From: Octopus bimaculoides
Lineage: Eukaryota
Length of the DNA stretch: 60,275 nt
Reading direction: 5' to 3'
NCBI RefSeq assembly: GCF_001194135.2
Contig: NC_068986.1
Span: 79,688,817 to 79,749,091 of the forward strand
In this document: one piece after another, positions 1,558 through 59,700 of the stretch
Numbering within the stretch: the first letter of the stretch is position 1
Layout of the letters: every line of letters begins with the position of its first letter
The notes under the pieces: generated by a model
What the model saw: only the letters and a program-made list of their open reading frames with translations
What the model was told of the DNA's origin: nothing
Database searches by the model: none
Position numbers and translations under genes: made by a program

Positions 1558-1576
1558 ACATGTGACAATTAGCTGG

Positions 1577-1651
1577 TTGTCATAATAAAACTCAGAGTTT
1601 CGGATACCGGGGACAAAGTCTGTTCAAGCATCTCATCAGCTATTAAGACAA
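1577..1651 (-). ncRNA. Type I hammerhead ribozyme (left arm of palindrome)
   Basis: The reverse complement reads TTGTCTTAATAG-CTGATGA-GATGCTTG...CCGGTATC-C-GAAA-CTC-T-GAG-TT-TTATTATGACAA. It has the canonical GAAAC and the same stems as the plus-strand copy. Confidence 0.8.
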
Positions 1652-1659
1652 AACGCGCG

Positions 1660-1734
1660 TTGTCTTAATAGCTGATGAGATGTTGGAACAGACTTCATCC
1701 CCGGCATCCGAAATTCTGAGTTTTATTATGACAA
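1660..1734 (+). ncRNA. Type I hammerhead ribozyme (right arm of palindrome)
   Basis: Stem I TTGTCTTAATAG(1660-1671) pairs with TTATTATGACAA(1723-1734), 11 of 12 positions. Core CTGATGA at 1672-1678. Stem II GATGTTGG/CCGGCATC with one extra C. GAAA at 1710-1713. Short palindromic stem III TTC-T-GAG. Predicted cleavage triplet GUU, cutting after 1722. Confidence 0.8.
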
Positions 1735-2180
1735 CCAACTAACTGTCACATATCATATTTATAGATAAATTCTTCTATTTTACATAATATCCAGGTCTCA
1801 TTTATTCTTCTGTTGTCATATTATTATTATTAATATATATATATATATGTATACTACAAATATAAGGATAAAATTTTATTAAAATATTTTATCAGTGGTC
1901 AGCATAGGAAAACTACCTTTTAAGGTGAAAATTAAAAATACAATTATAAATAAGGGCAAAAAAGAGATCGTCTAACCACATAAAATCTTCACTTATATTA
2001 TTGCACCACTTGTCAAAACGAGGAAAGCTAGCCAACAGAAATTCATGACCGACGACATTGTGTCGAGGCTTGCTACGGAATTTCTATTTGGATATATTTG
2101 GGGTACTTAAATGTATACATGACTGTGTACCTGCTTTTTCATGTGTATATCTAAGTATTTCAATTATTTTCATTATGTGT

Positions 2181-2249: not shown

Positions 2250-3075
2250 ATTTTTATGAATTTCTGTTAGCTTGCTTTCCTCGTTTCGACACATGTTGTA
2301 ATAATATACGTGATGTTTTATGGGATTAGACGATTAACCGTCTATTCTTCAGCATATTGGCAAAGAAAATTTTTCTTTGATTGGTATTTAGGCAGTGTGT
2401 TACATATCCCGGCGCCCAAATAGTTATAGGTATAAACCTGAACTTGTAATCAGGATAGAGTAACTGCAGATATTTCAATAGTTCAGCGTAGGTATTCTCT
2501 TTTTCACTGATCTTCAGCTTTATGTCAACATCCACTGGGCAGCTGATTTCCTCAACTGTGCACGGTTTCTGTTTTCTATTCCAAATCATTTTATCAAGCC
2601 TACTGTATTTACATTTTATTGAGGTCTTCACTGGGACATTCCACTAGTACTTCTCTTTAATATGAATGGTTATGGACTCCACCATACTGTGAGTTTTTAT
2701 TTCTTTGTCCTCAGGTTATCCTTTCGATGGATCTCGTTATACAGTGTCGTAGCTACATCATGTCTCATTGGCAGATAATACTGTGATGAAACTTTTAGAT
2801 AACTGCTTATGATGTGAGTGATATCTTCGGTGTTAACTCCGCAAAGTCTGCATCGGTTGTCATATTTTACTGTTTTTCCTTCATCTCTGTCCCTTTTGTG
2901 CATCAGGTATTTGGTTGATATTTCCTGTTCTTCGATAGCAAACGCATACCCTTCAAAGTGATCAATATTACTATCATCTCTGAGCTTTCTACTAACATAT
3001 CCATGCAAGGTCTTCTGCTTATATATGCTCTTTTCATCTGGTGATATGTTGCAGTAGAGTCGTGCGACTTCTTTG
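2250..3075 (-). mobile_element. 3' fragment of RLE-type non-LTR retrotransposon (R4/Dong/NeSL-like), frameshifted
   Basis: [14 protein letters not shown](C>Y) zinc knuckle, RHD motif, and the endonuclease region EISCP..LQLLYPDYKFRFIPI in ORFs 2697-3080 and 2326-2631. Confidence 0.85.
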
Positions 3076-3191
3076 GGCATGTATGTATGTATGTATGTAT
3101 GTATGTATGTATGTATGTATGTATGTATGTATGTATGTATGCATGTATGTATGTATGTATGTATGTAAGTATGTATGCATGTACGTATGTA

Positions 3192-4068: not shown

Positions 4069-4493
4069 ACTCTTTACTCTCTTTTACTCTTTTATTTGTT
4101 TCAGTCATTTGACTGCGGCCATGCTGGAGCACCACTTTCTTTAGTCGAGCAAATCGACCCCAGGATTTATTCTTTGGAAGCCTAGTACTTATTCTATCGG
4201 TCTCTTTTGCCGAACCGCTAAGTTACGGGGACGTAAACACACCAGCATCGGTTGTCAAGCGATGTTGAGGGGACGAACACAGACACAAACATATAGACGC
4301 ACATACACACACATATATATATACGCACATATATGACGGGCTTCTTTCAGTTTCCGTCTACCAAATCCACTCACAAGGCTTTGGTCGGCCCGAGGCTATA
4401 GTAGAAGACACTTGTCCAAGGTGCCACGCAGTGGGAATGAACCCGGAACCATGTGGTTGGTAAGCAAGCTACTTACCACACAGCTACTCCTGC
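4069..4493 (-). mobile_element. Full-length composite tRNA/CORE-like SINE (family A)
   Basis: A-box TAGCTGTGTGG, B-box GGTTCATTCCC, CCTTGGACAAGTGTCTTCT core, internal CA/TA microsatellite, 3' hairpin and (TAAAAGAG)n tail. Near-identical to 56123-56530. Confidence 0.9.
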
Positions 4494-4709
4494 ATATATG
4501 TATATATGCATACGCACACGTACTTACATAAACATGTGCATGCATATATACATAGTGTAAGCATCTGTTTGATATCTAAATTCCAATAAAAGAGCTTTGT
4601 TTCAAAGTTAAGAATTTCATTGGTTAGAAATATAAAATATACAAATAGAAGAACACATGTAAGCAAATACATACACATAGACACTGCAAGCAAGTCTCAA
4701 GTCCATCAC

Positions 4710-11029: not shown

Positions 11030-11235
11030 ATCTACCAAATCGTTAGAACGACGGCCACAATGCATTGCGGCATTTAGCTGCCTTTACGTTCTATGTTTAA
11101 ATTCCGCTGTGGTTGACTTTGACTTTCGTGCTTTCGGAGTCGATGAAATAAGTACCAGTTGAGCACTGGGATCGATGTAAGCAACTTTCCCCCCTCACCC
11201 ACAATTGCTGGCCTAGTGACAAAATTTGAAACCAA
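11030..11235 (+). mobile_element. SINE family B (tRNA-like head plus conserved GCCTTTCATCC..GTCGAT..AAGTACCAG central domain), decayed
   Basis: Alignable to the family B copy at 14354-14570. Confidence 0.75.
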
Positions 11236-11305
11236 CATGTTATCTTCTAAGGCGGTGATCTGTCAAAATCGTTAGCACGCTAGTCATAGTGCATAGTAGG
11301 ACGAA

Positions 11306-11694: not shown

Positions 11695-11874
11695 GGTGCA
11701 GGTGTGGCTGAGTGGTAATAAGCTGGCTTCTTAACCACATGGTTTCTGGTTCAGTCCCACTTCGTAGCATCTTAGAAAACTGGCTTCTTCTCTAGCCTCT
11801 GGCTGACCAAACCCTTGTGAGTGGATTTGGTAGACGGAGTCTGAAAGAAACCCGTCGTATATGTGTGTGTGTGT

Positions 11875-11911
<37 letters not shown>

Positions 11912-12121
11912 TGTCTGTCTGTCTTTGAGTCTGTTTGTCTCCACCACCACTTGACAACCGAAGTTGGTGTGTTTACGTCCCCACATACTAGTAGTTCTGC
12001 CAAAGTGACCGATAGAATAAGTACCAGACTTTAAAAAATTAAGTACTGGGGTCAATTCGTTCGACTAAAAATTCTTCAGTGCGGTGCCCCAGCATGGCCA
12101 CAGTCTAATGACTAAAACAAG
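11695..12121 (+). mobile_element. Full-length family A SINE
   Basis: Head GGTGCAGGTGTGGCTGAGTGG, core, internal (TG)n, and 3' half ending CAGTCTAATGACTAAAAC. Confidence 0.85.
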
Positions 12122-12658: not shown

Positions 12659-12909
12659 AAACATATTTTATTTTGTGTCTGAAGAGTCATTCTCCTTTAG
12701 TGCTTTATTACTTTTAACACACTCACCTGTTCGATTTCCACTCATTTACTTTTTTTAATTTTTTCTAAAAGTTTCGTTGCGTCTTGCAGCCTCTTCAATA
12801 GTCAGACTATTGAAGGAGTTGCAAGACGCAACGAAATCGAACCAGTGAGTGTGTTAAGTAATAAAGCACTAAAAGAGAATGACCTCCCCAGACACAATAA
12901 TATATATTT
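12659..12909. repeat. Long palindrome with 1-nt loop (axis 12804); right arm lacks ~37 bp
   Basis: AATAGTC-A-GACTATT centre. Arms align out to TTGTGTCTG/CAGACACAA. The deletion is bounded by GAAA microhomology. Confidence 0.9.
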
Positions 12910-13574
12910 GTGTGTGAGTGTGTATTTGTATATGTGTGTTTGTATGTATATTCACACTGGTGAATGTTTATTCACACGCTTATATGTTTATTCAGTTCCC
13001 TTATATATAAACAACTAGTCAAGCCTTTGCAACGCCATATTTGTGTGCGTGTGAGTGTGCGTGTGTATGTGTGTGTGTGTGTGTGTGTGAGTGTGTGTTT
13101 GTGCGTGCGCGCGGTTGAGTGTGTGTGTGTCTATGTGTGTGTAGATATAAATAACTTAATCACGACACAAATACATATAAAATATAAAGTCACGTGATAA
13201 AATATATACCTAGTTACAAGCGTGGGAGTACGCCGAGGTCATTGTATGAAAGTTAGAGCAAAATGTTAATATGGGGAAATGTAAGCATGTCTTCATATCA
13301 ACGTAGGTGAGTTACCAGGTGCTTGAAAGAAGCGCATATCGTTTCCATATGGGAGCCAACGTCGTTCTGGGTATATGGTTATGCGTCAGAACTTGCGAGT
13401 ACATGTGATATATACATATAAAGACACAGAGTAAGAGATAGATAAACACATGCACGCACACACACGCACAAAAATACACACGCGCGCTTACACACATACA
13501 CATACACACACACACACAGAAAGAGAAGAACATAGAAAAAGTAACTGGTACTTTTAGTCTTATATAATCCTTTC

Positions 13575-13780
13575 TAATATAGGTACAAAGCCTGAAATTT
13601 TATGGGGAGTGGGCTAGATGATTACATCGATCCCAGTTCTCGACTGGTATTTATTTTTATCGACTCCGAAAGGATGAAAGGCAAAGTCGACCTCGGTAGA
13701 ATTTGAACTCAGAACGGAGGAACGAGCGAAATAATGTGAAGCATTTTATCCAGCCTGCTAATGATTCTGCCAGCTCACCC
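13575..13780 (-). mobile_element. Family B SINE
   Basis: CGAAAGGATGAAAGGCAAAGTCGACCTCGG on the plus strand. Confidence 0.85.
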
Positions 13781-14147
13781 CCTCATGCTCTTATAGAATG
13801 TGCACATGTTTCAGAGACCGGCGTAGATTACATGGATCAAAGGTCCCTGCTAGGCAATAAAAGTCATTCTGTTCCTGTGTTCCTTTGTTTTACGATGCGT
13901 GGACTTCGCTTATTGACCTACCTGGAGTTATGAAGCTTGTTGGACAGCTTGAGCAAAGGTGTAGAGTGTGGAATTTAGTTACTGTTCCATCAAATTTTGG
14001 CAACGTATAGCGTTTTCCAGCGCATTTAGAGATCTTTCTCTCCCTTTCTCGCTTTCTCTCTCTCTCTCTCCATACATATATATATATATATATATACATG
14101 TATGTATATATTATTACATATATACAGAGAAAGACAGACAGACAGAC

Positions 14148-14315
<168 letters not shown>

Positions 14316-14353
14316 GCACATATACATGTGTCCATACATGCGAATATACATAC

Positions 14354-14570
14354 GGTGAACTGGCAGAATCGTTAGCACGCCGGGCGAAATGCTTAGCGGT
14401 ATTTCGTTTGCCGTAACGTTTTGAGTTCAAATTCTGCCGTGGTCGACTTCGCCTTTCATCCTTTCGGGGTCGATTAAATAAGTACCGGTTACGCACTGGG
14501 GTCGATGTAATTGACTTAATCCCTTTGTCTGTCCTCTCTGTGCTTAGCCCCCTGTGGGTAATAAAGAAAT
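14354..14570 (+). mobile_element. Family B SINE with target-site duplication
   Basis: Near-consensus copy flanked by ATATACATAC at 14344-14353 and 14571-14580. Confidence 0.9.
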
Positions 14571-15454
14571 ATATACATACATTACATTCATAGATAAATG
14601 TGGAGGTGTGTATTTGCTCATTTGGATGTATAAATGTACGCACTTAAACATGGCTGTATTTATATGTGCATTCTTCAAGTATGTATATGCTGGTGTATTC
14701 CAATGAATCATCCATGTAATTAAGCGCGTTGTTTAAAGAATAGCACCTCTTTTGGGAAGGTTGTTTAAATTTATATTCATAATTACTACTTATTTTCTTT
14801 GGGTTTTTTTATCACTAGCAATGTACATACACATGCATATGTTTAGGTAATATGAGTAAATATAACTCTTACACACACGCTTATACAAACATATACATAC
14901 ACACAGGTGTATTGCATATATACTGAGACAGCCCCAGCTGTCTCGACACAAAACATTGCTTGTGGACACGATTCGATCATGTGATGTTTTTCACGCCCAG
15001 AATCGTTGATTATTTAAGCTTACGTCGATTCATTCGGAAGGAAACGATCACATTATGGACTCTCACACTCTCACAGGTACATATACATCGACTCATTGTT
15101 GTGCATTGACTCTTTTTCGCCTTAACACACTTACTGTGGTAACAGACAGCCCATTTCTGCCTCGTGGGAAAATTGAAGTTACAATTCGTCACTTCGTACT
15201 TCAGTTACGAATTGTTGCAATATTTAGTTCGTTCGTTATATTCTGAGTATAATATTGTTTGTCTTATGTAATAACATGTATAGACACGTGCCAGTCGTGT
15301 AGCCCAATGCTCTAATGACTGTCAATCTACTGCTCTTCAAGTATCAGTAATGATGATTTGTAATTTAGGCATAAAGCCAAACCATCCCTTTCCAAAATAT
15401 TTATAGAACAAAACACAGGCAGCCGTCACACTCAGGTGACGTATAGCTTCGCAA

Positions 15455-16121: not shown

Positions 16122-16139
16122 CGTACACAGGCTAAGCAA

Positions 16140-16335
16140 TCTTTTCTACTAAAGGCACAAAACCTGAAACTTAGGGGGAAAAGACTAGTCAATTACGTCG
16201 ACCCCAGGGTTCCACTGGTACTTAATTTATCAGCCTCGAAAGGATGAAAGGCAAAGTCGACCTCGGCGGAATTTGAACTCAGAATGTAGCGACGGGCGAA
16301 ATACCGCTAAGAATTTTGTCCAACGCTAACGAATC
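16140..16335 (-). mobile_element. Family B SINE
   Basis: AAGGATGAAAGGCAAAGTCGACCTCGGCGGAATTTGAACTCAGAA. Confidence 0.85.
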
Positions 16336-17124: not shown

Positions 17125-17582
17125 TATTTAGAGCTCTAACAGTACAATAAAAAGACGAAAGCAAAACACAGCTCATATCCGAGACATATGAGATTGTGGT
17201 CGTTTATGTAGCTGAAGCACGCTAACATAATATAAAATTTATAATTATTTCTAACGTAAAACTTCTGACAATGTCACGCATTTCTGAAGAGGGTGCAGTC
17301 GTCAAATATGCAATATTTGATGAGAAAGAAAGGGGTGCACCAGCATCATGCCCAGCATTAGCATCTGACTGATGCACATTTGCCAATCTCTGAAAGAATG
17401 AAAGGCAAATTTAAGTCTGGTAGGATTTCAACAGATGTCTTTGTTAACCTTAAGCATATATATATCTTTTTATAAGAAAGATATATTTCGTGTATCTTAA
17501 TTTTTCTTTTAAAGGCAACTTAATTCAAGTAGCTGGTTTTAAAATCCCTGAAAGAGGTTCAAGTAGTAACGATCTTAAACAA

Positions 17583-17860
17583 TAATGTTTATTGCCACTT
17601 CTGCGTGGCTGTTTCATGCAGAACTTTGTTACTACATTTTAACCCCAAGAAAACATGTTTTCCAGCTGGTTAACGACACATCACCTATGTCATATATATT
17701 GCAAGTAAAGGCGCGAGTGGAGCGGTTCGCTTCCTTACTCGTAATATATATGACACAGGTTGTGTGTCGTTAACCAGCTGGAAAAGATATTTTCCTGGAG
17801 TTAAAATGCAGTAACAAAGTTCTGCATGGAACAGTCAGGCAGAAGTGGCAACAAACATTA
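17583..17860. repeat. Long imperfect palindrome (~128-bp arms), MITE-like, unclassified
   Basis: TAATGTTTATTGCCACTTCTGC... matches ...GCAGAAGTGGCAACAAACATTA throughout, with a GC-rich central spacer. Confidence 0.9.
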
Positions 17861-17924
17861 CTGCAACTTAATACATTTTCTACTAAACGAATCTTGCCCT
17901 ATGACTTAACGCTGAAAAGCAAAG

Positions 17925-18322: not shown

Positions 18323-19251
18323 GGCGGCGGCCTAAATTGGAAATTATACTCGAGAGAGAAGAACGAAGCTAAAGTGAATGCTCAAAAGAGCTCAAAAGCT
18401 CGGGGGGAGAAGCACAACTTATTTTTGTCTTAAATTCATTAAACAAAACAAGTAAAACAAGGGTTAACACCAAGTGTGACTTTACATCTTCTACAATGAG
18501 ACAACTTATCATATCATTTTTGGCTTCTCATTCCTTTTATAGTACTATTATATCCGCAAATACGATTGATTTGTTGTAATAATGCCCATTGCACTGGACA
18601 CTATGACGATAACAAACTTGATACATGACAACTACCTCTCTGGCCACTTCCAATTGTGACATGCTCGTACCGTACAAGGGGATCAAAGCAAGTCGTGGAA
18701 GTATACTTAAATTAGGTATAAACAATATGATCACTTTTTGACAGATCACAAGAAAGGGGGTAAATAACATAATAGGTTACTTTAATAAAGAACAAGAAAC
18801 TTGAAATTCGAACTAATGAAACTGTAAGGCATGCAAGAGACATGACGGTAGCAATAACAAATTGGAATGGTAGACATGGTAAGGATACAAATAGATGACA
18901 ATAAGAAAGAGTTGGTACGAGAATATAAAAGCCATACAGGACAGCTCTACAAACCAAACACACCAAAGGTTACGCAAAAACATTTTCAATACAAAAGGAC
19001 AGGCCATATTGTAACATCGCTAAGAAATTCATACAAAACATTTTATATCACCGACAACTAAACTTCTCGTACCTAAATGTAACTTTAGGCCTCCAATAGA
19101 TTATCCGAACAAGAAAACTATTTCTGAAACCTAACAAATATCAGTTACCGAACTAGATCATTTGGAAGAAAGACTACAGATGGAAAACACAAACAAAATA
19201 GCGTATAATCACTGAAATAGCGTATAATCACACAACTAAAATAACTAAATA

Positions 19252-19642
19252 GACGCAGGTGTGGCTGTGTGGTAAGAAGCTTCCTTCCCAATCACATGGT
19301 TCCGGGTTCAATCTCACTGCCTGGCACTTTGAGCAAGTGTCTTCTACTATAGCCTCGGACCCACCAAAGCCTTGTGAGTAGATTTAGTCGACGGAAACTT
19401 AAAGAAGCCCGTCCTATATATATGTATATATTTGTGTGCCTGTGCTTTCCCTCCCCACCATCGCTTGACAACCGCTGTTGGTGTGTTTACTTCCCCGTTA
19501 ATTAGCGGTTCGGCAAAAGAGACCGATAGAATAAGTACTAGCCTTACAAAGAATAAGTCCTGGAATTGATTTGTTCTACTAAAGCGGTGCTCCAACATGG
19601 CCGCGCTCAAATGACTGAAAGAAGTATTAAGAGTAAAAAGAG
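19252..19642 (+). mobile_element. Full-length family A SINE
   Basis: Head, core, internal TA/TG tract and 3' hairpin tail all present. Confidence 0.9.
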
Positions 19643-19740
19643 AAAATGCTAAGACACGACCAAGTTAACATCTAAAACATCTACTGATTACTGACTGGCA
19701 AAAATCGAATCAAACTTAAACTTTAAAAAATAGGAATAAA

Positions 19741-20142
19741 ATCTTTTCTACTCTAGGTACATAGCCTGAAATTTGATGGGGAGGGGGCCAGTCGATTAGA
19801 CCGATCCCAGTACGCAACTGGTACTTAATCTATCGATCCCGAAAGGATGAAAAGCAAAGTCGACCGCGGCGGAATTTGAACTCATAACTTAGACAGACGA
19901 AATACCTATTTCGTTACTGCCCACAAGGGGCTAAACATAGAGGGAACAAACAAGAACAGGCGAACGGATTAAGTCGATTACATCGACCCCACTGCGTAAC
20001 TGGTACTTTAATTTATCGACCCCGAAAGGATGAAAAGCAAAGTCGACCGCGGCGGAATTTGAACTCAGAACGTAGCGGCAGACGAAATACCGCTAAGCAT
20101 TTCGCCCGGCGTGCTAACGATTCTGCCAGCTCGCCGCCTTAC
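19741..20142 (-). mobile_element. Family B SINE dimer flanked by 15-bp direct repeat
   Basis: Two tandem units, with AAAAATAGGAATAAA at 19726-19740 and 20143-20157. Confidence 0.9.
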
Positions 20143-20251
20143 AAAAATAGGAATAAATTGAAACATTGGGAAGATTTGAGATTGGGAAATTCTAAAGGAA
20201 GAAATTATTTATGTCACAGAACACACAATTAAGGAGTAATTGAAGATAAGG

Positions 20252-34730: not shown

Positions 34731-35232
34731 TACAGTTCTATATTTAAGAGATGAGGAATTACGTACATTATTCGACGGATATTTGTCATCATTTTGTTTC
34801 AGCCTTCTTCAGGTGTCTTGAGGAAATTTCGAACCTGGGTTCTCATTCCTAAGGCATTTTTCGGTGTTATTATTATTATTGTTCAAGTCACTGCTTGGAA
34901 TCAAACTCGGAATCTTGGGGTTAGTAGCCCGCTCTCTTAACCACTACGAGGGCAATTATTGAGTGAATTTTAGGGCTTATAGATCTAATACTTTTCCTAT
35001 CCTTCCTTAATACTGGTTCCCATATGCTGCTCATATCTGCACAGTATTAAGGAAGGACAGAAAAATATTCGATTGATAAGACCTAAAATTCACTCCATAA
35101 TTACCTACTGGCATATGGCGTAGTGGTTAAGAGCCCTGGCTACTAACCCCAATATTCCGAGTTCGATTCCAAGCAATAATAATAACACCGGGAATGAGAA
35201 TTCAGATTCCCCTGAAGAAGGCTGGAGAGTAA
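34731..35232. mobile_element. Head-to-head palindromic element; each arm is a tRNA-like head plus hammerhead-like tail
   Basis: The arms align from CAGTATTAAGGAAGG outward. tRNA-like boxes at 35110-35175(+) and 34891-34948(-). CTGAAGA-AGGCTG motifs at 35212(+) and 34812(-). Confidence 0.8.
35110..35175 (+). promoter_or_regulatory. tRNA-derived Pol III internal promoter (A and B boxes)
   Basis: TGGCGTAGTGG (A box), CTACTAA anticodon-like loop, GAGTTCGATTCC (B box). No complete acceptor stem. Confidence 0.7.
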
Positions 35233-36567: not shown

Positions 36568-36789
36568 GGTGAATGTCACTTATATTCATTGCAGTATCTC
36601 GATGATGGCTGACATAGTTTCAGTATCGGTCTTTCAAGGAAAAACATATTCAAACGTTTGTTGTTGCATGCCATTTTGTACGGCTCCGCATGAGAATTTT
36701 AAAAAAAGAAAGCCAATGAAACATTTGATTGTAAAGTTCTCTTGCAGCTTTCAATAGAATGCTGCAGCTGCCTTGTGCTAATATTGATT

Positions 36790-37231
36790 TTAAATTTTTG
36801 AACAAGGTCAGCATGTTTGAGGGGCGGGGCTAGTCGATTTCATCGACCCCAGTGTTTAACCACTACTTATTTTATTGACTCCGAAAAGACGAAAGGCAAA
36901 GTCGACCTCAGCGGAATTTGAAGTCAGAATGTAAAAACGGACGAAATTCTGGTAAGCATTTTGTCCGGCATGCTAACGATTCTGTCAGTTCACCGGCATA
37001 CATTCACTTTTAAATAGCGGTTTCGAATTTTAGCACAAGGCCAGAAATTTCGAGGGTGGGAGGTAAATCGATTACATCGACCCCAGTACTCAACTAGTAA
37101 TAGTCATATCGACCCCGAAATATAAGATATGGTCGACCTCGGTGGAATTTGAAATCAGTGTATAATGACGGACGAAATGTCGCTAAGCATTTTCTCCCTG
37201 GCGTGCTAACAAATCTGCCAGTTCGTTACCT
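36790..37231 (-). mobile_element. Two adjacent family B SINEs; second copy has a 19-bp TSD
   Basis: TACATTCACTT(T/C)TAAATAG at 36999-37017 and 37232-37250 flanks the second copy. Confidence 0.85.
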
Positions 37232-37707
37232 TACATTCACTTCTAAATAGTAAAATGTGATACTCTTGCGTTAGCGCGATTTAGTGCATGTTAAGTGTCT
37301 TGGTCACGGAAGTTTTATTGTGCCTTCCTGGTAACGGTAGTTCAGACCATTTCTTCTCAGCTATCCGCAGATTCCACTGTATATAATTCAAATAATTCTC
37401 GCATCTTTGTCTTTCATAGGTGTTATGTCATTTAAATTCAGACTTTATTTCAACATTTTAAATCAATCTTCATTTATATCTTACATTAAATTACAAAATA
37501 TATTAATATCGTGATGTAATTTACATAAATAAATTTGTTAGATAACACTTAATTTTTATCTTCAACATAGATAAAGGACCACTAGAAGTAGACTAGCAAT
37601 TAAAATGGACATTCTAAATATTTACTGTAATTGAAAAGCTGTTATTTTTTTCATTTCAATAGTTTTCCTTCTTCCTCATTTTTAATAATAATAATAATGA
37701 TTTCTTT

Positions 37708-37896: not shown

Positions 37897-38425
37897 GAAT
37901 AACAACAGAAAAAAGATGGTATAAACACACGCCAGAAAAGGTCACAGAAAACGAGAAAGCAACCATACTCTGGGATATGCCAATACACACAGATAGAGAA
38001 ATTAAGGCAAATAGACCAGATATAGTTGTCAAAGATCATGAAGAAAAAAAAATGCTTTCTAATTGATGTATCAATACCAGCAGATGACAACGTTTCTCTA
38101 AAAGAAATGGAAAAACTTTCAAAATACAAAGACCTGGAAATAGAGATAACTCGAATATGGAATCTAAAAACAGAAACAATTCCTATCATAGTAGGTGCCT
38201 TAGGTATAATAAAAAAATATTCAGACAAATACATAACAAGAATACCAGGACTTACAAATATATATAACATACAGAAAATTGCACTACTGGGTACTGCACA
38301 CATTCTACGCAAAACACTTTCAATACAGTAAACATAAGAGCACCACAGCAAACCACAGCACATACCCAAGGCGCACAGAGCTGCGCTCGGTAGTGAAGTG
38401 AAAGCACGTTATAAAAATAAAACTA

Positions 38426-44149: not shown

Positions 44150-44528
44150 AGTGTTTCAGCAAAAAGGGATGATAGAATAAGTGCCATGGTTAAAAAGTAA
44201 ATACTGAGGTCGATTTGTTCGATTAAAATCATTCAAGTCGATGCTCCAGCTTGACCGCAATTCAGTGACTGAAACAAGTAAAAGATAAAAGATAAAGCAC
44301 TGAAAAGGACAAAGGCGGTAAACTGGCAGAATCGTTAGCAAGCCGGGCAAAGTGCTTAGCGACATTTCGTCTGTCTTGGCGTTCTGAGTTCAAATTCAGC
44401 CGGAGTTGATTTCGACGTTCATTCTCTCGAGGTCGGTAAAATAAGTACCAGTTGAATACTGGGGGCGATGTAATCGATATTTCCCCTCCCCCGAAATTGG
44501 TGGCCTTGTGTCAAAATTTGAAAACAAT
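44150..44528 (+). mobile_element. Family A 3' half followed by full family B SINE
   Basis: GATAGAATAAGT..CAGTGACTGAAACAAGTAAAAGATAAAAG, then AAGGCGGTAAACTGGCAGAATCGTTAGC. Confidence 0.85.
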
Positions 44529-45327
44529 ATATAAAAACACAAACTTAAAAAGCGACACGGAGCTTACTTGCAGAATAATAATCTCAACATTTTCAAGTCA
44601 GTGAGTGAAATGTTGAGCAGGAGCAGAAAACAGATACAGTGTGATCGAATATAAAAGCAAGAACGTACATGTAAATAGAACTGAATTACTTCAAGGCTGG
44701 AAAAGCTATTTTGTATAAAATCTTAACACTAAATTCCAACGCAAACCGGGAGCAATATAAAATATGCAGGATGATCCTTCAGAGTGCATACTAATGCAAA
44801 ATTAGAAAAAGGAAATGTAGAAAAGTAACAAAATGCTTGAAAGACCATGAAACCCTTCATACAGTTGTTATAGACAACAGAGGAACACAGGTTTTATGTT
44901 ATAGGTAATATTGAACATAGTGCGAAAAATAGAAAACACACCGAATGACTTAAACCGCTTGATAATAGCACCAATTAATGAACGAGGTGACATGCAAATA
45001 TCGAAAACTCCAGAGCGATTTCTTCCTGGGGAAACATGTTCAGTAAAACTTTTCACAATAGAATATAAAAGGAAATCGAAGAACCGACATGAGAAAGTGA
45101 TTATAGATTTAGACTTACGAGATGCACCGTTGGTGCAATTTTATAAAGTCGGAAAGCTTGTTGACAAGCTGACCAAAAGGAACATCAAATATTCTTGCAC
45201 TTGAACTTCATCGATAAGCGACTGACTTCGACACGACTTGGAGCAAGTCTTTTAGGAAGTGATGACAGTAATGTATATGTGTATGTATGTAGGTAGGCAG
45301 GTAGGTACGTACGTATGTATGTACGTA

Positions 45328-45712
45328 TCTTTTATCTTTTGTCTTTTACTTGTTTCAATCATTTTTGACTTCAGTCATGCTGGAGCACCGTCTTAGAGGG
45401 TTTTAGTCGAACAAATCGACCTCAGGACTTAGTTTTTAAAGCCTGGTACTTATTCTATCGTTCTCTTCTTTTGCTGAACCGCTATATTACGGGGGCGTAA
45501 ATACACCAGCACCGGTTATCGAGCGGTGGGTGGGGACAAACACTGGCACAAAGACGCTCACATTAAGAAGCTTGCTTCCCAACCACATGGTTCTGCGTTC
45601 AGTCCCACAGCGTGGCGACTTGGGCAAGTATCTTCTACTATAATCTCGGGCTAACCAAAGCCTTGCGAGTGGATTTCGTAGACGGAAACTGAAAGAATCC
45701 CGTCCTGTGTGT

Positions 45713-45757
<45 letters not shown>

Positions 45758-45893
45758 CGTGCGTGTGTGTGTGTGTGTGTGCGTGCGTGCGTGTGTGTTT
45801 GTGTTTGTGCCCCCAACCATCGCTTGACAACCGATGTTAGTGTGTCTACGTCCCCGTAACTTAGCGATCCGGCAAAATAGACCGATACAATAA
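45328..45893. mobile_element. Two family A SINEs back to back (3' half on - at 45328-45545; near-full on + at 45560-45893)
   Basis: Family A homology in opposite orientations. Confidence 0.85.
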
Positions 45894-50599: not shown

Positions 50600-52036
50600 T
50601 TTTTTTTTTAATACATACCGTAGATTCCACTCTTTTCCAGTCTGTTCATTTCTTTATTTACGATTTCAATTGCCGCGAACGGTACTTTTCTATTAGATTT
50701 AAATAGAGGCACAGCATTTTCACTTACTTGAAAACAGGCTTCACCCTTTTTGCATAGGTTTAAGTCCTCCGATAGTACTTGAGGAAACATCTTTTTCAAT
50801 TTTCACTTAAATTCCTCAAACGATATATTTTTAACGGGACAACTATTTATGTTTTTGCAGTAGAGACTTGTGGGAAGATACCATAAGTCAAATAACTCCA
50901 ACCAATCTGCAGCAAATAGATTGACTGTATTCTCCACAATCAATATTTTTGCTTCGCGTGTTTCTCCTCGAAATGTGATGTCTATACGCATTTCGCCCAT
51001 GAAATGTAATTTATCGCCCGTAGCGCCATACGTAATATACGCTATTTTACGTAACCTCGGTTTCACGATTATTCTCCATGTATCCGTATTTATGATTAAA
51101 ATATCACTACCCATATCCAACTGTAGATTAATATTTGCACCATTTATTTTTACGTGAACGAATTTTCTTGTTTTTGTGTCGCATTCACTTTCTGCTGAAA
51201 ACACCTTAGAGCTTTCTGCGTTCGAGCTTCGTAATCTTGTCCTGCAGAGTGAGCTTTTGTGACCAAGTTTCTGACAACTTTAGCATTTAGGGTTTTTAAA
51301 CGGACAGTCTTTACTGAAGTGTAGGCCTTCACATCCGTAACATGGATTGGGGCCTGGCACTCTTTTTTGGTTGTACTTTCCGGGTCGACACATCTGTATT
51401 TTTTAGGAATCTTTCTCTTGAATTTTTTTCACGTCGTGCTTCAGGTTTACTGTTGTTTACATTCTTCTGTAACGGTCTGTAGGGTTAAATCTTAGTCCGC
51501 TCGCTCAATTTTTGAGAGAATACTTGCCCGAATTTCTCTATCATCGGTTGCCGTAAGCCCTTCTACGAAGATAAAGGATTTAAACATATCCTGAGTGAGT
51601 TCCTGAAGCTTACATTTTTCACACATACGTTTGACTACTCCGGCGTATGTGATAAAGTCATCATCGTCATTTTTTGTTCAGCTCCAACACTCCATTACAG
51701 TGACAAATAACGAACATTTGTCACAAAAGATCTTTGATAATAATGCAATAGTTTCTTGGAAACACAATTCTCTCGACTTTTGGGGCAATATAAAGTTACA
51801 GTAGCATTCATGCTCGGCGGAAGCTACCTTGTGTAATAATAGCCTCACTTTCTCCTCATCCGACCATGACTTGCTATTTTTGTCAAAAATTTCCTCGTAC
51901 CTTCTATAGTACGCAGGAAACGTAATACCCTCCTCCGGATTACCAGTGAATTCAGAAATCGAGTTCGCCAAGCCTTTTGGCGTAAACAAACTTACCGAAT
52001 TTTCGAACTTCTTTGACTGTAACTCAATTAACAGTT

Positions 52037-52110
<74 letters not shown>

Positions 52111-52500
52111 TGTTGTGGTTGTAATATTTGCCTCTGCAACTTCTGTAGTTGTTCCTGTTGCTTCACTTAGAGCTATATTACTGCAGCTTATAGGTTCTCC
52201 ATAATTTAACAAATGGCATGATGCACACATTGTCAAATAACCTACGTGAGCTTCGAAAAATCCTCGTCACCAGACGCCTCCAATATCGTAGTACAGTTGA
52301 TATTGTCGACGATAGATAAAGAACACACTGTAACAATGTTATAACAATACAAAATAGAAACAGCGGCAATAACAAACACACAACGAACCAACAATCTTTT
52401 ACGAAACAGCAATCAATATTTCTATCACACTAACTCTAACTGTAAACTGTATGTGGACTTCAAAGACCAAACTACGAACGTTTTCTTTATTCGCCACACA
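50600..52500 (-). mobile_element. Second Gypsy relic of related family (probable LTR, PBS, gag, protease, start of pol)
   Basis: PBS TGGTGACGAGGAT 52272-52260; ATG at 52202; LANSISEFTGNPEEGITFPAYYRRYEEIF; LQLDMGSD; VPFAAIEIVNKEMNRLEKSGI. Confidence 0.9.
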
Positions 52501-52649: not shown

Positions 52650-54172
52650 ATAGTTAAAATAATTAACTAGACCTCAGCTGGAAATAAAGTTACCTGTCGC
52701 GATCCCTTTCCCCCGTGCCCTCCATACTGTTTCTTTTAGTATGGATACTATGCAGAAAAACTGTCCTTCCTCTCCCTGTTGAGGGAAGAGGGCGGAACAA
52801 TCTTGATAATCGATTCCGCCGATAGCTGTACTCTTCCTGTCGTTGACAACAGCTGCTCGACATGGGCTATCAGTCCTTTTATCTACGCACACTGCACGAA
52901 GGCGTGCTGGACAGTTTCACTGCCCTGCTCGCACCTCAGGCATGTCAGTGGGATAGCATAACTATGCCTCGATAGTCTCTCTCGAACAAGTAATTATCCA
53001 GGTACCGCTGGTCTGAAAATCCTCCCGAAAATGGTGACCAACTGATTTCTATCGAAGCCCAGTGTCTCCCCCATGATATCGTCTGACATATGCTCTACTA
53101 ACTCGCCATAGAAGTCCTCGGTGGAACTCCAGCTGCTAGCATTGGCCATCCGGGGAGCAGCGTGAGTGCCTGTCGGCACTGTAATTGCCAATCACCCAGC
53201 CTAGGTCTTCGCATGACCCAATGGCCTAAATCCCGAAAGGAGGTCAACAGTGGAACGAAGAATTTCATGAGCGGTGATCACACGGCTCACCATCCAGGTG
53301 ATACCTAAGGTGCCTAAGCTTCAGCGCAAACTTGCGCATCTTCAGCCACGGCATCCCTAGCCCACTGTTTAACGGTTTTTGACAGCAGACAGAGTGTTTT
53401 ACAAGTGATCTTCCCATCCACTAAAAATGAAAAAGGGGTCCTTCTAACTTGCTCAGCCACGAATCAGGACAAGGCACGACGCTCGTGCGGTAGGTGATAA
53501 CGGATGCAATAAACACCCGCGTCACCGCCCTTCCTAGCAGCGACAACGTCCTCCCAGACCAGATCTGGGTTAGAGCAGCTACCTTGCTTGTTACCTCACT
53601 CCAATTCTTCTCCATCCGGATCTAGACCAAACTAGCATCTTAACAGGACCTTCCGTCCAACGTCCCACGAAGTTATTGGGTGGCATTGACTTGCCCCTCC
53701 AGGTGCCGAGCTGCAAGCCGACCGACTTATCCTGATTAATTCTTGCTCCTGCCACCGCTTCGTATCTTCTGATGGTGTTTTCTACACAAGGTAGCTGCCA
53801 TTCATCAGACACGATGATGGTGATGTCATCCGCGTACCCGGCCGCCGTCTTGCCATCACTCAGATCACGCGGGTTGCCCCCTATAGCCTCCAGCCTTCGC
53901 AGCAATGGCTCAAGAGCCAAAAAATGCAAAAGCGGAGACAGGGTACATCCCTGGCGAACGCAGCGCTTTATCTCGAATGGTTTTGAGAGGAAGCCCTTGA
54001 CTCGGAAGACAGACTCGAGGCTGCTGTACATAGCAGCGATCCAGTCGCAGAAAGTCGGGCCCAGCACGGCCGCCCCAAGAACCGACGCCAGGTACCGATG
54101 GTCGACGATATCGAATGCTTTACTCTGGTCTAAATGCACCAGTGCCTCACCTTTGCCGGTAATTTTACCCAC
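52650..54172 (-). mobile_element. L1/Tx1-clade LINE reverse transcriptase fragment
   Basis: LDQSKAFDIVDH, VRQGCTLSP, YADD, INQDKS, and downstream W.GR.LSLLGR and GLGMP segments. Confidence 0.92.
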
Positions 54173-56122: not shown

Positions 56123-56530
56123 CTCTTTTACTCTTTTACTTGTTTCAATCTTTTGACTGTGGCCATGCTGGAGCACCGCCTTTAGTCGAGCAAATCGACC
56201 CCACGACTTATTATTTGGAAGCCTAGTACTTATTCTATCGGTCTCTTTTGCCGAACCGCTAAGTTACGGGGACATAAACACACCAGCATCGGTTGTCAAG
56301 CGAAGTTGGGGGGACAAACACAGACATACAGACACATACACACATACATATATATATATACATATATACGATAGGCTTCTTTCAGTTTCCGTCTACCAAA
56401 TCCACTCACAAGGCTTTGGTCGGCCCGAGGCTATAGTAGAAGACACTTGCCCAAGATGCCACGCAGTGGGACTGAACCCGGGACCATGTGGTTGGTAAGC
56501 AAGCTACTTACCACACAGCCACTCCTACGC
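56123..56530 (-). mobile_element. Full-length young family A SINE
   Basis: Nearly identical to 4069-4493 apart from the internal microsatellite. Confidence 0.92.
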
Positions 56531-56548
56531 AGATGTGTATATAAGTGT

Positions 56549-56738: not shown

Positions 56739-59700
56739 ATAGTAGTAGTAGCAGCAGCAGTAATAGTAGCAGTAGTAGTAGTCATTTTTGACATAGATTA
56801 CCATTATTTCGTTTAGAATTAAAATTGAAGAGAAATGGGATGTTGTGAAGTTCATGCTTTCCCGAAATGTGTCCACGTTATGACGTCAACAGATAATGTT
56901 TAGACAAATCCACTGTTTTTTTTACTCTAACGTAACATCAAACTCCACCACATTTTTAACCAATATCAACATAACAGATGCTTTGAATACCTGAATGTAT
57001 ATGATGCATTACTATCATTTTCCCTTCCTAGCATTCAACATATCCAAATCCAGTTAGTATTCTTGGTTATTTGTTTAAGTCGACATTGTTATTTCAGAAA
57101 TTACTTAGGCAAAAAAAGAAAAGAAAAGAAAGATAATAATAACAGAAAACAGAAAATAGAAAATCCAAATTTTCTCTCAGCGATTACACAGAATAACGAT
57201 ATGAAATGTTTGTTTACCTTCATTTTTTCGTATCATCTTTTTTTCTTCTTGTCTTTGAAATGTGTTCTTTAAGCAAGTTTCTCGTATATAGCCGCGAGAA
57301 GAAATGAGTTATATGACAAACGAAATACAATTAAGAAACGAATTGTTATAAAAAGAAATATGTTATATGTAATATGCAAATGTTTGTAACTGTGCAGTGC
57401 GTTCGCTATTAGAAATGAATTCGTGTATGCGAATGCTTCTAGGCGTGGATGTGTGTTTGCGTGATGCGTGTGCCTGTAAATTTGATACGCATGTTTTTTT
57501 CTAAGAGAGTAAGTCTTGTGTGCAGTAGAATTGGCGGAGTCAAACATAACGCTTCGTGGTATCAATTCCAGTCTCTGCGCTCTTACTTCAAATCGCACCA
57601 AAGTCAACTTGGTTGCTCATCCTTTCGAAGTCGATGAAAACATACCAATCCAAAGTATTGGATTGATGGAGCTGTTAGAACATCGTAGTGGATGCCTTGC
57701 GGTATTTTTTCCAGTTCTTCGAATCCTAACTTGTTCAAATCCCGCCAAGCCTACCTAGACGGTACACTTATTCCGTCACCTACTTTAAAAACCCCACCAC
57801 CTCGAACATTGGGGTGGCTTCAGTGGAGTTCACACTGTTGTACGCATTCAGGCTAGATTGCAAATTAAAGTATACCTTCCTCTCTTTTTCACACCTTCTC
57901 AGAGACCTGGTAAAGAATCATGGGCGCTGCATCCCCTCCTGACTGTTCAAATAACAGTTCAGATTTTCAATTATATATAAACATTAAATTAGATCCATTA
58001 CAACACGAAATGGCGAAACTTCGCACGGTTGACCTGTTTATGATCAATATAAGATACAATTCTGATGGACGGTTTTGTTCGCATTTTTCTACCTTGGGCT
58101 TCAAGATATTAGATTGGTTTTTCATCTTGAACAAAGAAATGCAATAGAAATATGTTCATATATATATCGATAGACAGCAGCAATGTCGTTTTTTAATATT
58201 TTCGTGACTAATTACTTTCAGATAATAATTTCTCAAAATCATAAGGATGACAGAGATAGATTTCGAAATTATAATATAAACAAAGAAGCGTCTGCATGTA
58301 TATGTACATGTATGCGCACGCATATGCGTGTATGAATACATTTACGGATGCGCGTGAGTATGCATGTGTATATATGCATGTGTATGCATGGGCGTATGTA
58401 TATGTCTGCATATATATATGTGTGTAAGTGTGTGTGTGTGTGTGTGTATATATGTATGCATAAATACATATTCGCACATATATATGTATGTGAACGCATG
58501 CGTACGTATGTCATTATACCTTCTTTCCTCCTCTCTGATTCCTAACTATCACTAACCTGTTACATACTGTCTCCACGTGAGCCTTTATATATTTTCGAAA
58601 TACCGGTAGAATAGCCTCTCTTGTCTTCATGTAAGCCTCTATTCATTCATAATCCCAATCTGGAATACTCATCTATATAAGTCTAAATAACTGGGTAACA
58701 CATTAAACACACCAATAGTCACTCCACAAACCCACTCGCCCAAAACATTCCATAATAATACACTTTGCAAATACATAGGGCCCCGCCTAGCACTAAGAAC
58801 TTCCTAAACTCTAGCAATAAGACAATCATTAGCCATAACACATTTTCAAAACCACCCAAATATTTGGTATGAGTTAGCTCCCTTTTCACCCTGTTAGAGT
58901 TATCCCATTTCACTTACACCGCCGGTGTTACTAATCGTAAAACGGAATACACGCGTGGGAAAAAAATGTACTTAATTAAACTAGGAAAACCGCACCTAAA
59001 TAATACTCACCCCACCCTAGTTACCCAACGAAACTAACCAATCTACAAGCAAACCTCTACCCAGTGAATTTACCAGCACAAGAACAAAAATTTAATGTAA
59101 GAATTACTACTTTGTTTACATTACCATCACATATGTATCAATTATTTTCGCATCCTAACCGATGCATCCATCTATATTCGCATTCTGAAGAAATTTACTT
59201 AAACCAGTAAATTGAAACGATCGTAAATGCTACCCTCATCTCTACTTCTTCCTTCTTTGTTATCTATTTACTTAAAGACATACCAGCGAAAACCACGAGT
59301 TTCCCATTGTTATTATATCCATTNNNNNNNNNNNNNNNNNNNNNNNNNNNNNNNNNNNNNNNNNNNNNNNNNNNNNNNNNNNNNNNNNNNNNNNNNNNNN
59401 NNNNNNNNNNNNNNNNNNNNNNNNNNNNNNNNNNNNNNNNNNNNNNNNNNNNNNNNNNNNNNNNNNNTATATATATATCAACTAATGTATACAGCCAGGC
59501 ACAATGTGATATCACAAAGGAAAAATTCAATCGTTACTAAGTGTGACTAAGGATGACGGAGCACGTACATTGCTAGAAATAAGAGTTAAAATACTCTTAA
59601 TTCTGTGAGAGGATCGCATAAAGTATGCACACGTGTTGACAAGGGAGGCAACTGCCCTATGACCGACTCGAGGGTACTCAGACTCGATCTAGTTTCACCT

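Follow-up and report, generated by a model that had tools for sequence, protein, structure and literature searches.

How a chromosome of Octopus bimaculoides came to carry a palindrome with a hammerhead ribozyme motif in each of its two arms is the question raised by positions 1560-1751 of the window, by which is meant the whole 60,275-nt stretch of DNA that was analysed. An inverted repeat of about 190 bp had been described here, and a blastn comparison of the element with itself bears this out, returning a 192-nt inverted match (E 4e-71) with the arms 89.6% identical as reverse complements. Self-blastn, the repeat search and the sequence place a palindrome without a spacer at 1560-1751. Its axis is the self-complementary hexamer CGCGCG (1654-1659), which may be the junction or annealing site of two copies, and a 2-nt asymmetry, the unmatched AA at 1652-1653, stands just before the hexamer. 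The repeat search also gave wider arms (1541-1651 and 1660-1770, 87%), in which a weaker, TA-rich symmetry reaches 1541-1770 and 1560-1751 is the solid part. The true ends cannot be fixed, because both outermost stretches of ∼19 nt are TA-rich and a (TA)n repeat is complementary to itself. An assembly artefact was considered as the source of the palindrome and was ruled out, since the arms differ by about 10%.

Read outward from the axis, each arm contains 13 of the 13 invariant core positions of the hammerhead ribozyme, as found by sequence and descriptor scan, and both arms have type I topology, with helix I open and holding the 5' and 3' ends. CUGAUGA, GAAA, an A15.1-U16.1 pair and U17 are present in both; uridine as H17 is permitted in hammerheads and is uncommon. 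The right-arm motif spans 1660-1734 on the plus strand, with helix I formed by 1660-1671 and 1723-1734, CUGAUGA at 1672-1678, helix II by 1679-1686 with 1701-1707 plus 1709 (C1708 bulged), loop 2 at 1687-1700, GAAA at 1710-1713, helix III at 1713-1721 and U17 at 1722, so placed that the predicted cut falls between 1722 and 1723. Its counterpart in the left arm occupies 1577-1651 on the minus strand, with helix I at 1651-1640 and 1588-1577, CUGAUGA at 1639-1633, helix II at 1632-1625 and 1610-1602 (C1603 bulged, one U·C mismatch), GAAA at 1601-1598, helix III at 1598-1590, U17 at 1589 and the predicted cut between 1589 and 1588. The earlier note had put the right-arm cut after 1722, which is the correct predicted site; its description of the helices needs correcting. 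Helix II has 8 bp provided that one C is bulged in each arm; without the bulge, one C is left unpaired between helix II and G12 and the pair G10.1-C11.1 is absent. If C1709 is taken as C11.1 paired to G10.1, with C1708 bulged, the core junction stays canonical. The other stems differ as well: helix I consists of 6 bp, a U·U and 5 bp, that is, 11 pairs over 12 positions, and its pair 1.1-2.1 beside the cleavage site is a U·G wobble, while helix III is an odd-length quasi-palindrome, AYUCUGAGU, of 2-3 bp. Under the rule by which Perreault et al. 2011 accept hammerheads, the pairs flanking the core at 10.1-11.1 and 1.1-2.1 must be proper ones (PMC3088659). Standard pairs fill 43 of the 44 pair cells over both arms; sliding the partners by 1-3 columns lowers the proportion to 32-52%. 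Outside the motifs lie the outer 3' tail of the right copy (1735-1751, plus strand; CCAACUAACUGUCACAU) and the mirror tail of the left copy (1560-1576, minus strand). The right tail, together with GACA at 1730-1733, can form a small AC-rich GACA/UGUC stem-loop, which may parallel the stem-loop at which reverse transcription by Penelope-type elements (PLEs) starts (PMC11167929). The type I hammerhead-like motif of each arm, whose helix III is weak and self-complementary, is, as had been proposed, in the PLE/retrozyme style of metazoan hammerhead (PMC4209133).

The arm motif is far above chance. A relaxed hammerhead descriptor run on 1500 dinucleotide-shuffled windows gave an expectation of 0.036 per window, and none of the 1500 contained two or more loci; the real window contains two independent ones, the palindrome and 59180-59230. 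A strict, strong descriptor found nothing in 200 shuffled windows. The second locus, on the plus strand, is a min-hammerhead motif identified in the descriptor scan, cleaner than and unrelated to those of the palindrome. It reads GCAUU, CUGAAGA, helix II, GAAA, a palindromic CGAUCG, U16.1, A17 (at 59225) and AAUGC, with a helix II of 8 bp (59192-59199 with 59206-59213). At the level of predicted structure, this candidate shows that the octopus genome carries PLE-style hammerheads, and two independent loci in a single window speak for a genuine enrichment of hammerheads in that genome. It lies outside the palindrome and is absent from the earlier note.

Rfam gave no hammerhead match for the whole window at gathering score, nor for 1511-1800 or an isolated arm at E ≤ 10; Hammerhead_1 (RF00163), the model that had been put forward as a check, and its clan thus matched neither arm even at this loose threshold. 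This negative result has little power, because the textbook-looking motif at 59180-59230 had no match either. Between the arms there are three one-sided pair-preserving changes, one broken pair and no compensatory changes, a comparison that yields no covariation signal because the arms are just two sequences. A covariance model built on both arms found no further arm copies in the window, its 10.5 bits at 59177-59234 being within noise. These points could be read as favouring a palindromic MITE, a foldback DNA element or an old inverted repeat without ribozyme ancestry, whose likeness to a hammerhead is fortuitous or degenerate. Palindromic repeats are common in the window, TA-rich DNA is a target of Tc1/mariner-type MITEs as well, and in the isolated right arm the hammerhead fold lies 9-12 kcal/mol above the minimum free energy. 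Against this origin stands the fact that all 13 core nucleotides and an NUH site coincide with three correctly registered helices, a combination rarely matched in shuffled windows, as well as the second independent motif. No recognisable TIR/TSD signature is definable at the palindrome, and no TSD is readable because its ends merge into TA repeats. An element without ribozyme ancestry is accordingly improbable.

The same letters invite two other readings as RNA genes. A box C/D snoRNA-like gene in each arm would use the CUGAUGA at 1672-1678 as box C, CUGA at 1715-1718 as box D and helix I as the terminal stem, and it is on exactly these boxes and this stem that Rfam weakly matches SNORD30 (16.6 bits) and SNORD69 (13.8 bits). 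Both scores are far under gathering (40 and 37, respectively), box C begins with C rather than a purine, and a 12-bp terminal stem is atypical. This reading, to which next to no credence can be given, was rejected for its wrong K-turn register, with three unpaired nucleotides after box D, at a point where a terminal stem ought to begin immediately, and just two on the box C side, and for the absence of any C' or D' box in 1679-1714. The other takes the palindrome as a hairpin small-RNA locus, in which a ∼95-bp duplex, if transcribed, would be a substrate for Dicer or ADAR (hpRNA, endo-siRNA or miRNA-like) and the hammerheads would be irrelevant. The hairpin is indeed very stable and matches many microRNA-precursor models, the best being MIR166 at 36.5 bits, but the gathering score of that model is 60 bits and the matches are spread over unrelated families, as with any long hairpin. 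MIR166 is a plant family. A microRNA precursor, of this or another such family, was rejected, the matches being sub-gathering and generic to hairpins with ∼95-bp arms. A small-RNA locus is very unlikely as the explanation, and it describes a consequence of the structure, compatible with the origin favoured below, rather than an origin.

Computed folding bears on whether the twin arrangement could have been selected. A read-through RNA is predicted to form the hairpin at -139/-152 kcal/mol, compared with -7 to -11 kcal/mol for the ribozyme fold, so the ∼95-bp hairpin would prevent ribozyme folding, in line with the hairpin lock of read-through transcripts that had been suggested. The functional reading is a hairpin-gated bidirectional ribozyme cassette, in which transcripts starting near the axis self-cleave and read-through is silenced. 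The gating is real in the thermodynamic model, and both cores are intact despite the ∼10% divergence of the arms. By a simple estimate (0.9^14), however, 14 core positions would stay intact by chance about one time in four at 10% divergence, and what changes there are include none that compensate and one that breaks a helix II pair in the left arm. Each transcript would hold one sense copy and no dimeric helix III, and as monomers the hammerheads of PLEs show almost no activity (PMC4209133). With one sense copy per strand, no intramolecular hammerhead dimer is therefore possible. The locus, moreover, sits in DNA rich in transposable elements and simple repeats with no gene nearby. A cassette under selection is thus a highly improbable reading, and the switchable cassette of the earlier note is not upheld for a single locus whose arms differ by 10% without compensatory changes. 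Equally remote is the broader proposal that the palindrome is not debris and is either such a selected bidirectional hairpin/hammerhead switch or the DNA copy of a minimal, rod-shaped RNA unit of ∼190 nt whose two polarities each contain a type I hammerhead. If such an RNA did exist, it would represent a chromosomally encoded animal equivalent of viroid-like double-hammerhead domains.

The surroundings of the palindrome are those of repeat DNA. A (TA)18 microsatellite (1521-1556), the likely insertion target, adjoins its left end and runs on into an assembly gap of 745 N (776-1520) that has (TA)n on its far side too. The right flank is degenerate and TA-rich at 1752-1770, followed by (ATT)n(TA)n at about 1820-1853, and beyond it a LINE-like ORF remnant lies on the minus strand at 2326-3080. 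The palindrome is present once in the window, and no direct repeat or tandem copy of an arm was found there; because (TA)n flanks the gap on both sides, a tandem copy hidden inside it is unlikely. Searches for further copies of the arm were negative in the window, in two metagenome pattern scans (one with no matches, the other with a chance 21-mer in a phage-like gene), in one viral scan (two chance matches, both inside coding sequence) and in two small octopus contigs. Contigs coding for relatives of the neighbouring LINE ORF have nothing but its coding part in common with this locus and lack the palindrome. Pfam searches of ORFs and a motif regex over the whole window found no ORF or remnant with a PLE reverse transcriptase (RT) or GIY-YIG domain, the only RT fragments being LINE-like. 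Three further palindromes, unrelated in sequence and spacer-less or nearly so, occur within the same 56 kb (12659-12909, 17580-17863 and 34892-35175).

Taken together, the palindrome is probably a decayed head-to-head pair of strongly 5'-truncated 3' ends, about 96 nt each and of PLE pLTR or non-LTR-retrozyme type, set in (TA)n. Each copy would represent the hammerhead-bearing 3'-terminal part of a parent retroelement; the 3' ends of the copies face the TA-rich flanks and their 5' truncation points meet at CGCGCG. In the parent element, the hammerhead may process multimeric transcripts, acting as a dimer through its quasi-palindromic helix III or aided by a protein of the element. Integration may have begun with a staggered break in a TA tract, at which both 3'-OH ends would prime reverse transcription of the same RNA; alternatively, a single cDNA could have snapped back on itself. 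Since two identical cDNAs can anneal to each other only where the sequence is palindromic, a join at CGCGCG would leave arms of equal length with no spacer between them. PLE families have been reported in Octopus species, and PLE insertions are often accompanied by an inverted, 5'-truncated copy next to them, favour (TA)n and disrupt short-read assemblies (PMC8557442). A PLE protein studied in purified form cuts both target strands and extends them, and it begins reverse transcription ∼90 nt downstream (3') of the site of hammerhead cleavage (PMC11167929), so that even very short 5'-truncated copies can still hold the hammerhead. This published biology, with inverted truncated copies, targeting of (TA)n, both strands cut and extended, and hammerhead pairs on opposite strands, is enough to explain the arrangement. 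The corresponding features here are head-to-head copies with their 3' ends outward, flanked by (TA)18 and the gap to the left and by TA-rich DNA to the right. Inverted copies, a (TA)n target and an assembly break are suggestive of PLEs and not exclusive to them.

The three unrelated palindromes nearby leave room for palindrome formation here being a general DNA-level process rather than one specific to PLEs. Under that reading, a single truncated hammerhead copy was inserted and was later duplicated in inverted orientation at CGCGCG, for example by replication template switching or fold-back repair, in an event independent of retrotransposition. The symmetry of the arms seems to continue for ∼19 nt into the TA-rich flanks, as it would if flanking DNA had been duplicated, but this symmetry is uninformative because (TA)n is self-complementary. 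With precisely such an inverted arrangement on record as an outcome of PLE integration (PMC8557442, PMC11167929), a later duplication is rather unlikely. The favoured reading, a PLE-type pair formed at integration, agrees with the fold-back product of Penelope-type integration proposed in the earlier note, given the adjoining (TA)n and gap and the inverted truncated copies known from such insertions (PMC8557442). The description of the head-to-head twin as unusual, in contrast, is not well supported: opposite-strand min-hammerhead pairs have been known since 2014 (PMC4209133), an inverted 5'-truncated neighbour is common in PLE insertions (PMC8557442), and the window contains the three additional palindromes. 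Most likely, no function of the pair is under selection at this locus, and the palindrome is a known kind of structure rather than a new ribozyme class or form of regulation. If the family assignment is confirmed, the locus would be a compact natural record of Penelope-type integration making a palindrome, in which two minimal 3'-end copies of equal length meet at a self-complementary hexamer within (TA)n target DNA, and would bear on how the inverted repeats of PLE insertions arise. The locus would then also place min-hammerhead motifs on record for a cephalopod; a literature search found no paper on hammerheads in octopus.

Among the known systems closest in kind are the min-HHRs of PLE pLTRs (Cervera & de la Pena 2014, PMC4209133), which share with the arms a metazoan host, type I topology, a CUGANGA/GAAA core, a long helix II (7-8 bp, compared with 8 bp here) and a weak helix III, self-complementary at 15.2-16.2, that implies action as a dimer. 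They too occur mostly as dispersed solo or truncated copies, with opposite-strand pairs reported, and their parent elements likewise favour AT-rich or (TA)n targets and leave inverted 5'-truncated copies. The differences are in detail and context. PLE min-HHRs have an unpaired nucleotide between A9 and 10.1, whereas the arms have the bulged C1708 in the 3' strand of helix II; helix I has 4-5 bp in the former and 12 positions in the arms, which also carry the rare U at H17 and a G·U at 1.1-2.1. PLE opposite-strand pairs lie 100-700 bp apart, while the copies here are joined without a spacer, and PLE min-HHRs sit in the pLTR of an element with RT/GIY-YIG coding capacity, a context not seen for the palindrome.

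Metazoan non-LTR retrozymes and satellites (newt satellite 2, Schistosoma Sm-alpha, mussel, coral and axolotl; PMC7229834) resemble the arms in their type I topology, a 6-bp proximal segment of helix I, a helix III that is short and closed by a small loop, and a setting in AT-rich repeat DNA, and retrozymes self-cleave as dimers. Unlike the single inverted pair seen here, which has no tandem copy, retrozymes are head-to-tail tandem units of 170-400 bp that give rise to circular RNAs. Helix II of the palindrome is twice as long as theirs, and loop 1/loop 2 contacts are not recognisable. In the Avsunviroidae, hammerheads of both polarities lie within self-complementary domains. Delta-like circular RNAs (PMC7761336) similarly have one hammerhead per polarity in a self-complementary region, with a rod or hairpin fold of greater stability competing with that of the ribozyme. 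These viroid-like and delta-like RNAs replicate and carry type III hammerheads, whereas the palindrome is a single chromosomal locus with type I motifs and a TA flank that shows no sign of being an RNA replicon. In LINE-1, twin priming or snap-back during target-primed reverse transcription also produces an inverted 5'-truncated pair from one integration, with the junction at microhomology. Twin priming usually inverts different parts of one element, not two equal 3'-end copies. In the origin favoured here, the enzyme would be not that of LINE-1 but the RT/GIY-YIG protein of a PLE (PMC11167929).

The inverted repeat of ~190 bp claimed at 1560-1751 proved to be a true palindrome. A repeat search of the window returned arms at 1541-1651 and 1660-1770 (111 nt, 87% complementary) with 8 nt between them, and a blastn comparison of the element with itself gave a 192-nt inverted match of 89.6% identity (E 4e-71). 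The axis is a self-complementary hexamer, CGCGCG, at 1654-1659, with two unmatched A residues just before it. The arms differ at ~10% of positions, which rules out a simple assembly artefact. Exactly one such element is present in the 60-kb window, where a search with a covariance model of both arms revealed no further copies.

Read outward from the axis, the right arm (+ strand) carries a helix I 5′ strand UUGUCUUAAUAG (1660-1671), CUGAUGA (1672-1678), a helix II strand GAUGUUGG (1679-1686) with partners CCGGCAU (1701-1707) and C1709, a 14-nt loop 2, GAAA (1710-1713), helix III A-UUCUGAG-U (1713-1721), U17 (the nucleotide 5′ of the predicted cut) at 1722, and the helix I 3′ strand UUAUUAUGACAA (1723-1734). 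The left arm repeats this layout on the − strand (CUGAUGA 1639-1633, GAAA 1601-1598, U17 at 1589). These placements agree with the coordinates of the earlier note and with its predicted cut after 1722, while its three stems hold with qualifications. The 8-bp stem II exists only if one of the two Cs before GAAA stays unpaired: either this is the last C, between helix II and G12, which is non-canonical, or it is C1708, a 1-nt bulge beside the pair of C1709 and G10.1. We prefer the latter, since the conserved junction G10.1-C11.1 is then maintained. The 12-position stem I is present as a helix, built of 6 bp, a U·U and 5 bp, and opening with a G·U wobble beside the cleavage site. The self-complementary stem III is near-palindromic, but its odd length makes it a quasi-palindrome; in a monomer it amounts to at most 3 bp and a triloop, and between two molecules to 8 pairs flanking a U·U (computed at -5.7 kcal/mol for one arm and -10.3 kcal/mol for the other). 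Standard pairs fill 43 of the 44 pair cells over both arms, as against 32-52% when the partners are slid by 1-3 columns. Both arms have the core and topology of the hammerhead class, with a G10.1-C11.1 junction pair that depends on the bulged C and a G·U at 1.1-2.1. By their core, the motifs look like type I hammerheads in the style of the minimal hammerheads (min-HHRs) of Penelope-like elements (PLEs).

Chance matches were counted with a descriptor requiring CUGANGA, GAA, A15.1-U16.1, an H17 that is not G, and helices directly beside the core. Its strict form (helix I ≥ 5 bp, helix II ≥ 6 bp) had 0 matches in 200 dinucleotide-shuffled versions of the window; relaxed to permit one helix II bulge, it gave 0.036 matches per shuffled window, with two loci in 0 of 1500 shuffles. 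The real window holds two independent loci, the palindrome and a second motif at 59180-59230 (+) that the earlier note had not flagged. This motif reads GCAUU / CUGAAGA / AAUUUACU-UAAACC-AGUAAAUU / GAAA / CGAUCG / U / A / AAUGC, giving helix I GCAUU/AAUGC, an 8-bp helix II with perfect pairing, a helix III that is perfectly palindromic (CGAUCG), U16.1-A17 and a predicted cut after 59225; it is a clean putative min-hammerhead, cleaner than the palindrome arms. Upstream of it, 58700-59180 is markedly A/C-rich (+ strand), and downstream of the predicted cut an ORF from an ATG at 59227 enters an N gap at 59324. The likeness of the arms to hammerheads very probably reflects real ancestry rather than coincidence. 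That the palindrome is instead a MITE, a foldback element or an old inverted repeat whose hammerhead appearance is fortuitous is distinctly unlikely, being countered by both the shuffle statistics and the second motif.

The Rfam check proposed earlier produced no hammerhead family match for the palindrome, whether at the gathering score or at E ≤ 10 on 1511-1800 and an isolated arm. Rfam also returned nothing on the clean motif at 59180-59230, even at E ≤ 10; the models are therefore insensitive to the minimal long-helix-II style, and the negative for the arms weighs little. SNORD30 (16.6 bits) and SNORD69 (13.8 bits) aligned to cUGAUGA, CUGA and the terminal stem, as for a box C/D snoRNA in each arm, but the K-turn register is wrong and C′/D′ boxes are absent, and this reading is barely credible. 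The Rfam model of the plant miRNA MIR166 scores 36.5 bits on 1603-1708, against a gathering score of 60, and UUGGAACAGACUUCAUCCCC agrees at 16 of 21 positions with what we take to be mature miR166. We judge this likeness coincidental, the hairpin being generic and the genome that of an animal. A small-RNA hairpin locus, which would be compatible with the other readings, is very unlikely, as the MIR166 score and those of four unrelated miRNA models are generic long-hairpin matches.

For the right arm in isolation, the hammerhead fold lies at -7.5 to -10.9 kcal/mol, 9-12 above the MFE fold, in which helix I runs on into the core; a hammerhead fold above the MFE is common among real hammerheads and is not decisive. 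The proposal that read-through RNA would be silenced by the long hairpin is borne out by computed folds of -139 (+) and -152 (−) kcal/mol that exclude the ribozyme fold. This thermodynamic gating is real, but the switchable ribozyme cassette built upon it finds no indication of selection. Comparison of the two arms (two sequences only) gave 3 one-sided pair-keeping changes, 1 broken left-arm helix II pair and 0 compensatory changes; all core positions are identical, which is expected by chance about 1 time in 4 at 10% divergence (an estimate) and is thus no sign of selection. We therefore consider a hairpin-gated switch extremely unlikely. Also extremely improbable, in our view, is that the palindrome is a minimal double-polarity hammerhead RNA copied into DNA, or a bidirectional switch under selection. 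There is one sense copy per strand, so a dimeric helix III requires a second molecule. U17, the G·U at 1.1-2.1 and the helix II bulge argue for poor predicted activity, and the palindrome most likely has no function at present.

The window is eukaryotic, with 36.6% GC and abundant microsatellites and N gaps. Immediately left of the palindrome, (TA)18 at 1521-1556 enters a 745-nt gap with (TA)n also on its far side; on the right, degenerate TA-rich DNA is followed by (ATT)n(TA)n at ~1820-1853 and the 3′ end of a LINE-like ORF (2326-3080, −), a C-terminal piece with no Pfam match. Relatives of this ORF, ~70% identical in DNA, occur in marine metagenome and Logan contigs; they have only the coding part in common, and the palindrome is absent from them. 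Just 3′ of the ORF, an inverted repeat at 1967-2046 / 2256-2334 (80 nt, 85%, 210-nt spacer) may represent a MITE or belong to the LINE 3′ UTR, and comparable pairs are present at 38489-38597/38771-38879 and 11305-11426/11801-11922. There are 12 N runs (4255 N in all, one at 776-1520), and those inspected have the same microsatellite, such as (TA)n or (CA)n, on either side, so the gaps represent long SSR tracts rather than lost unique sequence. Like the LINE-like ORF at 2326-3080, two further features are non-LTR retrotransposon remnants: a C-terminal ORF piece without a Pfam match (38026-38331, +) and an RVT_1 reverse-transcriptase fragment (53591-54172, −; Pfam E 2.5e-18); no Penelope-type RT/GIY-YIG ORF was found in the window. 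A gag-like DUF7083 ORF (51678-52166, −) has its best protein relatives in Octopus sinensis (62% identity) and O. bimaculoides (57%), which assigns the window to a cephalopod, and beside it lies an ORF with no Pfam match (50803-51204, −). Interspersed repeats in the window share 83-92% identity with those of an O. sinensis contig, and the host is thus an octopus or a near relative of one. One ~430-bp family has at least 8 full or partial copies (e.g. 4073-4506, 11697-12121, 19246-19646, 45564-45893 and 56123-56543) and 83-88% identity to two copies on that contig; this and a ~200-bp family (11038-11238, 13560-13783, 14353-14571, 16138-16335, 19772-20143, 36780-37250 and 44313-44536) are probably SINE-like.

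Three further palindromes of unrelated sequence, 250-285 bp each, lie at 12659-12909, 17580-17863 and 34892-35175 (arm identities 64%, 84.5% and 79%), so palindromic repeats are common in this genome region. To the eye, the arms of the last are tRNA-like (GGCGTAGTGGTTAAGAGC...TTCGATTCC), with (AAT)n beyond them on the outer side; ARAGORN called no tRNA in the whole window. As palindrome formation may therefore be general in this genome, the same hammerhead-bearing element could have become palindromic through a later DNA-level inverted duplication, although we think this unlikely.

We consider it probable that the palindrome is a head-to-head pair of ~96-nt 5′-truncated, hammerhead-bearing 3′ ends of PLE or retrozyme type, set in (TA)n. 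The sense strand of both motifs runs from axis to flank with the junction at CGCGCG, and the 3′ ends therefore face TA-rich target on both sides. Both 3′-OH ends of a cut target may have primed cDNA on the same RNA, or a single cDNA may have snapped back. Annealing between two identical cDNAs would require a self-complementary stretch; paired at CGCGCG and extending each other, they would yield equal arms and zero spacer. A retrozyme array was rejected for the palindrome, and for the family of PLE pseudo-LTRs the insertion signature alone fits.

Precedents exist for much of this arrangement. Metazoan genomes harbour minimal hammerheads of type I in their thousands (Cervera and de la Pena 2014, PMC4209133), with a large helix II (7-8 bp), self-complementary 15.2-16.2, implied dimeric action and low in vitro activity; most are dispersed single motifs regarded as truncated PLEs (PMC4209133). 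PLE insertions are strongly 5′-truncated (Craig et al. 2021, PMC8557442), and an inverted 5′-truncated copy often directly adjoins them, giving inverted repeats that disrupt short-read assemblies; Naiad PLEs prefer a (TA)n target, a similar bias is hypothesised for Neptune, and cephalopods, Octopus among them, have PLE families (PMC8557442). In vitro, the Anolis Poseidon PLE protein cleaves an AT-rich target on both strands and extends them, its hammerhead is protein-assisted and dispensable for in vitro insertion, and its reverse transcription begins in an AC-rich stem-loop ~90 nt 3′ of the hammerhead cut (PMC11167929). The outer end of each arm here has a small AC-rich stem-loop, GACA-ACCAACUAAC-UGUC (1730-1747), which recalls that start site as a resemblance only. 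Opposite-strand hammerhead pairs and inverted PLE copies are thus already published, and what is new is a small twist on them, a palindrome centred on a palindromic hexamer: the dual min-HHR motifs explicitly noted on opposite strands are ~100-700 bp apart (PMC4209133), whereas those of the octopus palindrome have no spacer.
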